From: Orbicella franksi
Taxonomy: Eukaryota
NCBI GenBank assembly: GCA_964199315.1
Contig: OZ116707.1
Location: forward strand, 7,564,001-7,628,000
Direction of reading: 5' to 3'
DNA: 64,000 nt
Part shown: positions 2,722 to 35,029 of the stretch, piece after piece
How the letters are laid out: each line of letters begins with the position of its first letter
Numbering within the stretch: position 1 is the stretch's first letter
Notes under the pieces: model-generated
Seen by the model: only the letters and a program-made list of their open reading frames with translations
Databases searched by the model: none
Told to the model about the DNA's origin: nothing
Position numbers and translations under genes: made by a program

Positions 2722-4195
2722 ATGTATGGGAAAGACTCACTGAAGTACCTTTATTCAAAGGACAAGGAGACAACTGTTCAAGAATCTGATGATCCCAGAT
2801 GTCTCTTCCAGTATGACCATGATGTATGGGAGGCAAATTATGACACCTATATAACAGCGATTGACGAACCAGATGATTCTCCAAAGATAGCAAAGTCACT
2901 GAAACCTCACCTTGATAAGGTTTCTCATCTGTCTGATGAGGTGTCTTCCAGTTTGGATCCAAAAAGTTGCAAGATTCCTCCAACTAATCCTGTGTCCAAT
3001 GGCAAGTCTCAGTCAGTGGACTGCCTAAAGGTACTGCCAGCTGTGGAGTCCAGCAGTGCTTCCAGCCCCCATGTCATAGACTTGGCCAGCACTGAATCAA
3101 CAGCATCAAACCCTGCATGGCTTACCACTCTTTCATCCTAGACGAGGAAGCAGCTCGGAACCATTCACGTGCCTAAAGTAACAGCCACCCCAATTCACTC
3201 AAGTGATATCACAAGGGTATTTGGCGCATACAGTGAAAAAGATTCCCTATCTCTAAATGAAAGACCCCCTGAGCAAGTAGTGTGTGATGCTGAAAAGCCT
3301 CTAAGAATGAAGCAAAACAACTTGAAAGCTACAGGTGTTCAAATTAAAAATCTTGGAACATTTTCCAGCAACAGGATCTCAATCTTGAGGAAATTTTGTG
3401 ATATATCCTCATTAAGAGCATCTATTCGAAGTGAGGAGAGATGGCTCATGGCAACTACAGATGGTCTCACTGCTAATGAAGTTAGATCCATTGAACAGGT
3501 GTTGTGGCATCAGCGAATTGGTGAGACAATGTTAAGAGCTGGGCAGAAATCCGTCGATGTGGGATCTTTCTCAACTCTTGTCGGGGAGCGCTATCTGGAC
3601 AACTTTGTGATTGATATTGCCATTTTGCATTATGTCTGGGATGGCCAGAAGCAAGTGGGTGCAAAGGCACTCTACCTTCCATGTCAAATACACACTTGGC
3701 TGAAGAACAAAGATGAGTTGTTCATTAAACAAAAGTTTCAGGGGGTACTTGGCACCTCAAGGGGGAGTGAGTTTGATCTTATTCTGTTGCCACTGCATAT
3801 GAATGAGATACACTGGGGTCTGATTGTCATTGACCTTCTTGGTAGGAAGTTGTTGTTGGATGATGGTTTCAAACTGCAGCCTGCTGGCAGTGTATTACCC
3901 ACCATTAAGTATATCCTTGATGTTTTCCAGCAGCTGATGCTGGGTGCTCCATGTTTTAACAGTTTCTTTTGGTCCTCTATAAATGTTCTTGAGCGATTTG
4001 GAATGCCATCTCAGCACAACTGTGATATGACGGCAAGGGAGTGGGAGCTGTGGCGTTGGTGTGATTCTAGCAGTGAGGGACTTCATTTTCAAGGGTATCA
4101 ATGGAACAGTTAATCAGTTTGGATGGCAGTACACAGAAATGAGGCATTTGAGAAAGAAGTTGATGATTCAGATCATTAAATGGGCTTCTGAGTAG
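2722..4195 (+). pseudogene. Ulp1/SENP-family (C48) cysteine protease pseudogene
   Basis: ORFs 2722 and 3169 share a frame, separated by TAG at 3139-3141. Motifs YLDNFVID, LPLHMNEIHWGLIVID (His), LDDG (Asp) and PSQ are present; the catalytic Cys block GSCGVGVIL continues in another frame after ~4030 to a stop at 4195. Confidence 0.75.
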
Positions 4196-4546
4196 TTTCT
4201 GTTATTGGGATTCTTGCCAAATGCTAGATAAAACTATTGTTAATATTATCATCTCCACAATGTATTCATGGATGTTTTCATATTTTTTGTTTCAGTTATT
4301 GTTTGGCCTTCCTGAAGCAACAGAGGAACTTGGCTTCTTCAAGCTGTGACTCTGTGAGAGTATTTCTCCAGGTGCTTCTTGGGAACAAAATGTGAGCTTG
4401 AGTGTAAGTAATTTTTTTTTTTCAATTTGTGAGTCTGGGAAGCTTTTTCATGAGTGTTTCTTAGGCAATTAAAGATACATTTTATATTTCTCATAATTAT
4501 TAATATTTTACAAATTAAATTGTAGTATTAGGAAATATAAACATTA

Positions 4547-31734: not shown

Positions 31735-34700
31735 ACAAAAGTTTCAGGGGGTACTTGGCACCTCAAGGGGGAGTGAGTTTGATCTTATTCTGTTGCCACT
31801 GCATATGAATGAGATACACTGGGGTCTGATTGTCATTGACCTTCTTGGTAGGAAGTTGTTGTTGGATGATGGTTTCAAACTGCAGCCTGCTGGCAGTGTA
31901 TTACCCACCATTAAGTATATCCTTGATGTTTTCCAGCAGCTGATGCTGGGTGCTCCATGTTTTAACAGTTTCTTTTGGTCCTCTATAAATGTTCTTGAGC
32001 GATTTGGAATGCCATCTCAGCACAACTGTGATATGACGGCAAGGGAGTGGGAGCTGTGGCGTTGGTGTGATTCTAGCAGTGAGGGACTTCATTTTCAAGG
32101 GTATCAATGGAACAGTTAATCAGTTTGGATGGCAGTACACAGAAATGAGGCATTTGAGAAAGAAGTTGATGATTCAGATCATTAAATGGGCTTCTGAGTA
32201 GTTTCTGTTATTGGGATTCTTGCCAAATGCTAGATAAAACTATTGTTAATATTATCATCTCCACAATGTATTCATGGATGTTTTCATATTTTTTGTTTCA
32301 GTTATTGTTTGGCCTTCCTGAAGCAACAGAGGAACTTGGCTTCTTCAAGCTGTGACTCTGTGAGAGTATTTCTCCAGGTGCTTCTTGGGAACAAAATGTG
32401 AGCTTGAGTGTAAGTAATTTTTTTTTTTCAATTTGTGAGTCTGGGAAGCTTTTTCATGAGTGTTTCTTAGGCAATTAAAGATACATTTTATATTTCTCAT
32501 AATTATTAATATTTTACAAATTAAATTGTAGTATTAGGAAATATAAACATTACAATCACTGTTTGGCTTGCCTGAAACAACAGAGGAGCTTAGCTTTTTC
32601 AAGCCGCAAATCTGTGGGAAGCTTTTCCCCAGTTGTTTCTTGGGCTCTGAAATGTTCATTATTTCTCTTAAAAATCATTTTTGACTTGTTAATAATGAAG
32701 TAAGTAAATGTATATAAATATCGCAATCACTGTTTGACTTGCCTGAAACAACAGAGGAGCTTAGCTTTTTCAAGCTGCAAATCTGTGGGATGCTTTTCCC
32801 TGGGTGTTTCTTGGGCTCTAAAATGTTCATTATTTCTCTTAAAAATCATTTTTGACTTGTTAATAATGAAGTAGGTAAATGTATATAAATATTGCAATCA
32901 TAATTTGGCTTGCCTGAAACAACAGAGGAGCCTAGCTTTTTCAAGCTGCAAATCTGTGCGAAGCTTTTCCCCGGGTGTTTCTTGGGCACTAAAATGTTCA
33001 TTATTTCTCTTAAAAATCATTTTTGTCTAACTCATAAAGAAGGAAGTTAAAATGTATATAAATATTGCAATCACTGTTTGGCTTGCCTGAAACAACAGAG
33101 GAGCTTAGCTTTTTCAAGCTGCAAATCTGTGGGAAGCTTTTCCCCGGGTGTTTCTTGGGCACTAAAATGTTCATTATTTCTCTTAAAAATCATTTTTGAC
33201 TTGTTAATAATGAAGTAAGTAAATGTATATAAATATTGCAATCACTGTTTGACTTGCCTGAAACAACAGAGGAGCTTAGCTTTTTCAAGCTGCAAATCTG
33301 TGGGAAGCTTTTCCCCGGGTGTTTCTTGGGCACTAAAATGTTCATTATTTCTCTTAAAAATCATTTTTGACTTGTTAATAATGAAGTAAGTAAATGTATA
33401 TAAATATTGCAATCACTGTTTGACTTGCCTGAAACAACAGAGGAGCTTAGCTTTTTCAAGCTGCAAATTTGTGGGAAGCTTTTCCCCGGGTGTTTCTTGG
33501 GCTCTAAAATGTTCATTTTTGACTTCTTGAAATAATGAAGTAAGTAAATGTATATAAATATTGCAATCACTGTTTGGCTTGCCTGAAACAACAGAGGAAC
33601 CTAGCTTTTTCAAGCTGCAAATCTGTGGGAAGCTTTTCCCCGGGTGTTTCTTGGGCACTAAAATGTTCATTATTTCTCTTAAAAATCATTTTTGTCTAAC
33701 TCATAATGAAGGAAGTTAAAATGTATATAAATATTGCAATCACTGTTTGGCTTGCCTGAAACAACAGAGGAGCTTAGCTTTTTCAAGCTGCAAATCTGTG
33801 GGAAGCTTTTCCCCGGTTGTTTCTTGGGCACTAAAATGTTCATTATTTCTCTTCAAGATCATTTAATGAAGAAAGTTAAAATATTAATGTATATGAATAC
33901 TGCAATCACTGTTTGGCTTGCCTGAAACAACAGAGGAGCCTAGCTTTTTCAAGCTGCAAATCTGTGGGACATTTGATGTTCCCCGGGTGTTTCTTGGGCA
34001 CTAATACATGTTCATTGGTTACTGGTATCTTAAAAACAACAATAAAGGCTTATTTATATGTATATGAAAAGTGCAGTTTTTCACTTGTATATTGTATTCA
34101 TTACTAATGCATACATGTGTATTTTGACTTTGGAGTTTAAGGATCCTGTTCATGATATTTTGAAACTGCTGTTACTTCATACATGAACCATGGACCTTGG
34201 AACATTGCTCTTAACTTAAGGTCTACCTTTGTGTGAACTATAACATGATCTAATGAGGTTTTTTTTCTCAGTGATCCCAAATTTTGAAGCCAAATTTCTG
34301 ATCCCTGACCCTGCAAGTGAGAAAAAAGTTGATCTCTGATCCCACAAAAAAGATACAGTCTGATCACTCGGTGGTCCCTAAAACTTTGTTATCCCAATTG
34401 CTGGCTTGTGATCCCTAATTTAAGGTCTGTGAATGGCAATCCTACACTTTTGATCCCTGATCACAAATACCCCATTACGAACCTCGTACATGTATAAAGA
34501 CTCTTTAAAAAGAGGGTTGGTATGTTATTTTTCTGATGTTTTACCTTACTAACAAAATTAAATTTGCTATATTCTACCAGTCAGATATCACTTGTCTGCA
34601 CATTACTCTACTTAAGGTCTACCTGTTGTCTGTTGATTTGTCTATAAATGGACTTTTCCCATATATATTCTAACAGTTAAAATTCCATTTGTAGAGGTTT

Positions 34701-35029
34701 CAAATATCGGGGACCAGATTAGCTCGTATTCCCTTGTTGCTCTGCCTTCTCCAACACCAACAATTATTTTTGACTGAAGGGAGGCCTTCTTGGCAATCCG
34801 CATTTTTTTAGCAGCTTCAAGGGAAGCAGGACCAGACAATTCAAGAACACTGCTGGGTAGCTCAGTGCTGCCATTAAAAGATTTTGTCGAGTGCAACTTC
34901 ACCATTGATTGCTCAGACAGTGCTTGCTCTAAGTCACCGATGTTGTAGGTTTTAAATGACATCCGCAAAGCTCTTTCCTTCCACATGGGAGGTTTGAGGT
35001 GTCTGTGTTCTTTTACCCCATTGAGTTTT
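31735..35029 (+). repeat. Copy A' of the direct duplication (3295 bp; 5'-truncated Ulp1 pseudogene; no Sola3)
   Basis: Begins at the Penelope 3' end with an AC microhomology and matches copy A through 14261. Confidence 0.95.
32553..34025 (+). repeat. 171-bp satellite, 9 units
   Basis: Unit starts at 32553, 32724, 32895, 33068, 33239, 33410, 33564, 33737, 33903. Confidence 0.97.

Follow-up and report, generated by a model that had tools for sequence, protein, structure and literature searches.

How can a retroelement come to lie between two kilobase-sized copies of the same host DNA? The question is raised by a locus of the coral Orbicella franksi, contained in a stretch of 64,000 nucleotides (assembly GCA_964199315.1, contig OZ116707.1, positions 7,564,001 to 7,628,000 of the forward strand). 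This whole stretch is referred to here as the window, and positions are counted from its first letter. A Penelope-like element (PLE) in the window is flanked by a direct duplication of host DNA. The upstream copy is designated A, the downstream copy A', and the outer flanks X and Y, so that the locus reads X-A-PLE-A'-Y. The inner borders of A and A' match the two termini of the PLE to the base. Both the insertion and the duplication were probably made by one aberrant retrotransposition event, a reading that is held with moderate confidence.

The duplicated segment and its junctions

The direct duplication of A and A' is real and is confirmed by comparison of the window with itself. The main part of A occupies positions 3725-7469 (plus strand), and its last 73-74 bp, which terminate in ...TACCCCATTGAGTTT, lie at 14188-14260 (plus strand). 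A' (31737-35029, plus strand) is continuous with Y. Positions 3725-6009 align with 31731-34016 at 97.95% identity over 2,294 bp, and a second matching block pairs 5050-7469 with 32541-34955. The final 74 bp of A, split off by a 6.7-kb inverted-repeat element, are matched at 98.6% (14188-14261 versus 34956-35029). Strict identity to A' begins at 3731, the preceding positions 3725-3730 being a five-in-six microhomology to the end of the PLE. A' measures 3.3 kb and A, discounting the 6.7-kb insertion, 3.8 kb. The gap corresponds to three units of a 171-bp satellite, whose array extends over 1,997 bp in A (4535-6531) and 1,476 bp in A' (32541-34016). The window is free of N. The left flank X (1-3724, plus strand) runs into A and holds the start of an open reading frame (ORF) at 3169-4113. 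This ORF of 314 amino acids crosses the border between X and A uninterrupted, as the initial annotation had stated. Its proposed identity as an Ulp1 gene is weak: the translation has a His-box like that of Ulp1/C48 peptidases, and the match to Peptidase_C48 (E=0.013) lies under the Pfam cut-off.

Both junctions between host DNA and PLE can be described precisely. The 3' end of the element, ...TTTTACAC at 31736, is the true terminus of the family: of 14 other copies, 12 or 13 stop at this very base and the remaining one or two within 2 nt of it. A' starts right after this terminus. At the border between X and A (3730/3731, here p1), the six target bases TTAAAC are identical at five of six positions to the element end TTACAC. 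At the other end of A (14260, here p2), the 15-mer TACCCCATTGAGTTT forms a tandem pair at 14246-14275, so that the PLE is preceded by a repeat of the final 15 bp of A (14261-14275, plus strand). The 15-mer is single at the end of A' (35014) and single in a paralogous block on contig C7. X shows no nucleotide match to the segment between A and A', and Y matches that segment solely via the 74-bp end of A. No PLE remnants were found beyond A and A'.

Two simple interpretations can be set aside on these grounds. A is not an LTR-like part of the element, as the 14 other copies end at the terminus equivalent to 31736 and have unrelated flanks. The lack of outer remnants rules out an unequal crossover in which both PLE copies lay on one chromosome. 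The initial annotation had used that lack as a general argument against crossover. The observation stands, and the argument fails against crossover between two allelic insertions, which is considered below.

The ancestral arrangement is preserved in the C7 block, which is about 96% identical to the window and collinear with positions 1-43463 apart from insertions and deletions. X is about 97% collinear with it. The block reads X-A-Y: it has a single A, intact p1, intact p2 and one 15-mer. The right flank Y (35030-36924, plus strand) is collinear with the sequence directly after this single A, the match extending from 34558 to 36924 (c7rc 19219-21579) at 96.5%. A retrocopied host transcript or a 3' or 5' transduction is rejected on the same evidence, since the borders X|A and A'|Y are ancestral and contiguous in C7 and an RNA-derived copy would have had to end exactly at the insertion site. 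The direct duplication, the X-A-PLE-A'-Y topology with both duplication borders at PLE termini, the 15-bp slippage duplication at the 5' junction, the element end at 31736 and the single-A ancestor had all been proposed from the window sequence, and all are upheld by the self-comparison, the family copies and the C7 block.

The two blocks are part of a segmental duplication of at least 20 kb at about 96% identity, between C10 (window 1-43463) and C7:12.70-12.74 Mb on the minus strand. The C7 copy is not a misplaced haplotig, as homology stops at window position 43463. A third copy at C10:7745009 is more distant, with 70% identity. Each main block has acquired DNA of its own: the C7 block carries a 4.3-kb insertion at the equivalent of window position 3027, and the window carries one of 4.5 kb (36925-41468), which includes a reverse transcriptase (RT) ORF at 38965-40284. 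The 171-bp satellite array varies in length among A, A' and the C7 paralog.

An endonuclease-less Penelope-like family

A whole-genome search with the segment between A and A' resolved its 17.5 kb into three nested layers. The initial annotation had treated the entire segment as one Penelope element; it is in fact a PLE of 3.27 kb with later, nested Helitron-type DNA. The PLE comprises positions 14276-16162 and 30352-31736, and its two halves are contiguous in the copies on C15, C4, C6, C1, C5 and C9 and in others. It opens with a pseudo-long terminal repeat (pseudo-LTR; 14276-14387, plus strand), whose 112 nt repeat the 3' end of the element (31625-31736) with two CpG-type mismatches. The 5' part of the body (14388-16162, plus strand) encodes an N-terminal domain with a ...KKADKG motif. 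The 3' part (30352-31736, plus strand) carries the RT ORF (30414-31682). This ORF matches RVT_1, and its translation contains ...KKADKGTTTVVMN... and YIDD, which identifies an RT of the PLE type.

The element shows further hallmarks of PLEs. A pseudo-LTR is typical of the group (PMC8557442), and the 112-nt tail before the head is also found in the other full-length copies L011 and L012. Copies are 5'-truncated at many points and share one 3' end, and inverted partners are present in L012 and L014. The 5'-truncated copies L013 and L016 are preceded by bases, or by a longer piece, of their own 3' end (TTACAC...). These 5' junctions suggest that the RT may have jumped from internal positions of the template to a second RNA tail.

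The RT ORF ends in ...SLKDILVRAKL, 54 nt short of the element terminus. Inspection of the translation revealed no GIY-YIG endonuclease motif in the N-terminal part and no C-terminal endonuclease domain before the end of the ORF. Homologues are present in corals by the thousand, and the nearest named ones occur in Acropora, Montipora, Oculina and Porites. Five full-length coral homologues (P0001, P0010, P0017, P0068 and P0074; 853-887 amino acids, 65-87% identical) all stop at the same residues, ...LKDILV(R/K)AKL, directly after the RT part. The missing endonuclease is therefore a conserved trait of a coral PLE clade and not a truncation of the copy in the window. By domain, motifs and homologues the element is grouped with endonuclease-less PLEs. 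The early suggestion that it lacks an endonuclease is thus borne out by the ORF end, the N-terminal part and the homologues. A hammerhead ribozyme, which many but not all PLEs carry in the pseudo-LTR, was not detected with Rfam: positions 14000-16500 gave nothing at E<=1, and the window as a whole gave nothing at gathering score.

The family is young, with about 20 copies at 93-98% identity, of which 14 besides the copy in the window were examined together with 3.3-7.6 kb of flank. A 20-bp target-site duplication (TSD) flanks one of these copies and a 10-bp TSD another; one case, located in satellite DNA, is ambiguous, and the remaining 11 have none. Such variation is what insertion at pre-existing breaks would be expected to give. 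The general lack of TSDs, the variable 5' truncation and the absence of a target motif fit the use of pre-existing 3' ends. The copies lie megabases inside contigs of 21-45 Mb. The reef-coral clade as a whole has intact ORFs of 850-890 amino acids, and the copies L011-L025 are mostly without TSDs.

Origin of the duplication

A single event is the simplest explanation, because both borders of the duplication match the ends of one retroelement and the paralog has a single A. It is supported by the 5' end of the insertion, which has the family's normal tail-plus-head structure, and by the lack of PLE remnants outside A and A'. Further support comes from the divergence between A and A' in their right part, which at 1.9% is comparable to that between pairs of PLE copies (2-4%). 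The proposed course is as follows. (i) The endonuclease-less element would depend on host 3'-OH ends that already exist. (ii) Reverse transcription would be primed by the bottom strand at p1, where five of six bases are shared with the 3' end of the RNA; this priming may have taken place at a fork or gap. (iii) The RT would reach the 5' end of the RNA and jump to a second RNA tail, yielding the 112-nt pseudo-LTR. (iv) A 3' end of the top strand at p2, situated 3.3 kb downstream of p1 and not a few bases away, would then be joined to the cDNA, with slippage of 15 bp at the join. (v) The intervening DNA would be copied or retained on both sides, leaving A to the left of the element and A' to its right; the source of this DNA could be the same duplex, the sister chromatid or the homologue. 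The outcome is in effect a 3.3-kb TSD, and equally a tandem duplication with a retroelement at the joint.

Several observations weigh against this account. The first is that it has no parallel within the family. The initial annotation had anticipated kilobase duplications as a family property; none of the 14 other copies has a kilobase repeat in the flank examined, and flank searches for three other copies, either negative or uninformative, disclosed no second copy nearby. As far as the 14 copies show, the 3.3-kb duplication is a one-off. The second is that the empty site is seen in a paralog only and not in a phased allele. The third is the uneven divergence of the two copies. Over the left unique 809 bp A and A' are identical, and over the right unique 938 bp they differ by 1.9% (17 sites and one indel), differences that the C7 outgroup splits about evenly between them. 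At least 5 of these 18 right-part differences also segregate in three other individuals, whose single-copy alleles in the right part are mostly of the type found in A. An origin of A and A' from two haplotypes would account more easily for such shared polymorphisms. The differences are not a clean clock: they reflect either exchange with single-copy alleles or two haplotypes of origin.

Evidence from other samples consists of short-read contigs and junction words from public runs labelled as coral metagenomes. The sequence words across the PLE|A' junction (31707-31766) are complete in five runs from three studies, partial in four more and wanting in many runs of the same studies. As the words are present in runs of several studies, the PLE|A' junction is real; it is polymorphic or lineage-specific. 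In the sample X2, the contig over A starts exactly at 31735, where the sequences X-A and PLE-A' converge, as expected if both junctions are present. The contigs of X1, X6 and X15 run from X into A unbroken; X1 and X6 are not among the holders of the PLE|A' junction. Two features of these data again count against a single event. A further contig of X2, at the low depth of about 7x, passes 35029 without a break, which is unexpected if the junction between the end of A and the PLE is present. No short-read contig links both PLE junctions on one molecule. Ratios of contig depth are about 1.4x in a presumed carrier and a presumed non-carrier alike; they are inconsistent and were not used.

The two rivals that survive best both start from two ordinary insertions, and each is considered unlikely. 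According to the first, one homologue received a PLE at p1 (X-PLE-A-Y), the other independently received a PLE in the same orientation at p2 (X-A-PLE-Y), and unequal crossover within the misaligned PLEs then produced the duplication. Such an exchange leaves no outer PLE copies. It would explain why right-part differences between A and A' coincide with population polymorphisms, and it is compatible with X2, where a PLE|A' junction seems to occur together with an unbroken contig from the end of A into Y. The coincidence that it demands is considerable: of about 20 young copies in 497 Mb, two must have inserted within 3.3 kb in the same orientation, met in one heterozygote and recombined. In addition, four derived alleles in the left part are common to A and A' and absent in the three other individuals and in C7, pointing to one haplotype of origin, or else to later conversion. 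Among the loose ends listed at 35030 in four runs, neither an X|PLE-5' junction nor a PLE-3'|Y junction is found.

The second rival, given the same low standing, is an assembly chimera. Here the two simple insertions would be present on two haplotypes, the assembler would have switched between them inside the PLE, and A and A' would be alleles. Differences between the copies do resemble ordinary heterozygosity, in their shared polymorphisms and in their patchiness (0% versus 1.9%). Difficulties in assembling PLE structures are on record (PMC8557442), and the read evidence for the locus comes from short-read contigs. The low prior of two nearby insertions applies here as well. Moreover, the switch would have to be confined to the 1.4-1.9 kb of shared PLE on either side of a unique 14-kb nested insert, a distance that long reads span easily, and the gap-free window with its resolved 2-kb satellite arrays suggests a long-read assembly. 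An alternative haplotig of the locus was not found in the assembly.

That A and A' arose first as a tandem duplication by an unrelated mechanism, the PLE landing later at the joint or being captured there, is very improbable: tandem duplications are common and a joint could be fragile, which would suit an element dependent on breaks, but the PLE fills the joint with base precision at either end and leaves no joint sequence over, random insertion at that one position among about 6,600 has a probability of about 1.5e-4, and capture during the duplication would turn this explanation into the single-event reading.

The single aberrant retrotransposition remains the preferred account, and further changes completed the present structure of the locus. 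The PLE was invaded by a Helitron-type element, followed by a Helentron, and A by a TTAA-duplicating transposon. The satellite arrays drifted apart by three units; in the left 0.8 kb, A and A' either were homogenised or never diverged. A more general reading, that the endonuclease-less coral clade spreads within chromosomes via stray host 3' ends and thereby recurrently makes kilobase tandem duplications in the germline, is at present doubtful.

Of the elements inserted later, the first to enter the PLE, designated TE2, is a 3.2-kb repeat whose left part (16163-17549, minus strand) contains a DUF6570 ORF at 16302-16811 on the minus strand and whose right part lies at 28500-30351 (minus strand). 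DUF6570 is a domain of Helitron proteins. TE2 sits in the PLE without a TSD, and several copies of it at 96-98% identity occur on C14, C3, C10 and C8. Within a T-run of TE2 lies a Helentron-like rolling-circle transposon of about 11 kb (17550-28499, plus strand) with palindromic ends. Its ORFs encode an OTU protease (17958-19817), a Rep/PIF1-helicase/AP-endonuclease protein of 1,768 amino acids (19807-25113), in which the AP-endonuclease region is C-terminal to the Rep and PIF1 helicase parts, and an OB-fold protein (26803-27507). Short Helentron derivatives elsewhere in the genome (C7, C15, C8, C11 and C6) keep just the first 0.7 kb and the last 2.4 kb. Capture of A by a Helitron, or formation of the tandem by rolling-circle replication, is rejected, as the Helitron-type elements lie cleanly nested in the PLE, clear of both A and A'.

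The element that splits A is a DNA transposon of 6.7 kb (7470-14183), which is missing from A' and from the C7 paralog. It has terminal inverted repeats of about 765 bp that are 91% alike (7465-8228 and 13422-14188 by BLAST), termini GAGGCTGTCC.../...GGACAGCCTC and a TTAA TSD at 7466-7469 and 14184-14187. Its ORFs gave no Pfam match.

Comparison with known systems

The mechanism proposed for this locus is a variant of a known one. The initial annotation had presented it as new in kind, a view that is superseded by work on human LINE-1 (L1). L1 insertions with tandem duplications of 1-10 kb, termed large TSDs, are mentioned in a preprint (bioRxiv 10.1101/2024.12.14.628481, citing Gilbert et al. 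2002). Another study describes tandem duplications whose joint is occupied by an L1 and attributes them to cDNA that invades a sister-chromatid 3' overhang downstream of the integration site (PMC7058536). The coral locus shares with the L1 cases a retroelement at the joint of a direct tandem duplication, a 3' end that abuts the downstream copy and a length in the 1-10 kb class. It also has the topology illustrated in Fig. 7 of PMC7058536, in that a single element meets the upstream breakpoint with its 3' end and bears the marks of an RNA intermediate, namely the terminus at 31736 and the template-jump tail. In contrast to L1, the element belongs to the PLEs and not to the LINEs, and it lacks both an endonuclease and poly(A). 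Unlike the L1 events, which were observed in tumours and cell culture, the coral event is a germline event found in natural samples and old enough to have received three later transposon insertions.

A second precedent is endonuclease-independent insertion of L1 at DNA lesions, reported for endonuclease-mutant L1 in repair-deficient cells (Morrish et al. 2002, as cited in later work). Such insertions reportedly use pre-existing 3'-OH ends, mostly lack a TSD and are 5'-truncated, as are the coral copies, of which 11 of 14 have no TSD. Unlike the mutant L1 of those accounts, the coral family is a natural one without the endonuclease domain altogether.

Endonuclease-less PLEs include Athena and Coprina, which are described as restricted to chromosome ends, and others such as MjPLE01 that represent losses within endonuclease-positive clades (PMC8557442). 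Losses of the latter kind are considered possible if other ways to secure 3'-OH groups are adopted (PMC8557442). Like all three, the coral element has a pseudo-LTR and an RT of the PLE type with a DKG motif; its copies include 5'-truncated and partial inverted ones, and GIY-YIG is missing. Unlike those of Athena and Coprina, its copies are interstitial, and they would fit endonuclease loss within an endonuclease-positive clade. The locus draws attention to an abundant, apparently active and interstitial clade of endonuclease-less coral PLEs, elements that are generally described as confined to chromosome ends.

If correctly interpreted, the locus would show the L1-type outcome in the germline of a wild animal, in a different class of retroelement and with an element devoid of its own endonuclease. 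Its two junctions, one marked by microhomology (p1) and the other by 15 bp of slippage (p2), form one concrete pair that allows the steps of joining to be deduced. A single event says little on frequency; if the recurrent reading were true, the PLE clade would be a natural, retroelement-driven source of segmental duplications. The R9 retrotransposons of rotifers (Gladyshev and Arkhipova 2009) reportedly produce a constant TSD of about a hundred bp at a specific site in ribosomal DNA. Their TSD, like the one described here, is far longer than usual; it is said to be a constant family trait, whereas the 3.3-kb duplication is a one-off. The locus is most likely a natural germline example of the kilobase-sized large TSDs that have so far been described for human LINE-1, and what sets it apart is the class of element, its lack of an endonuclease and the germline and natural setting.

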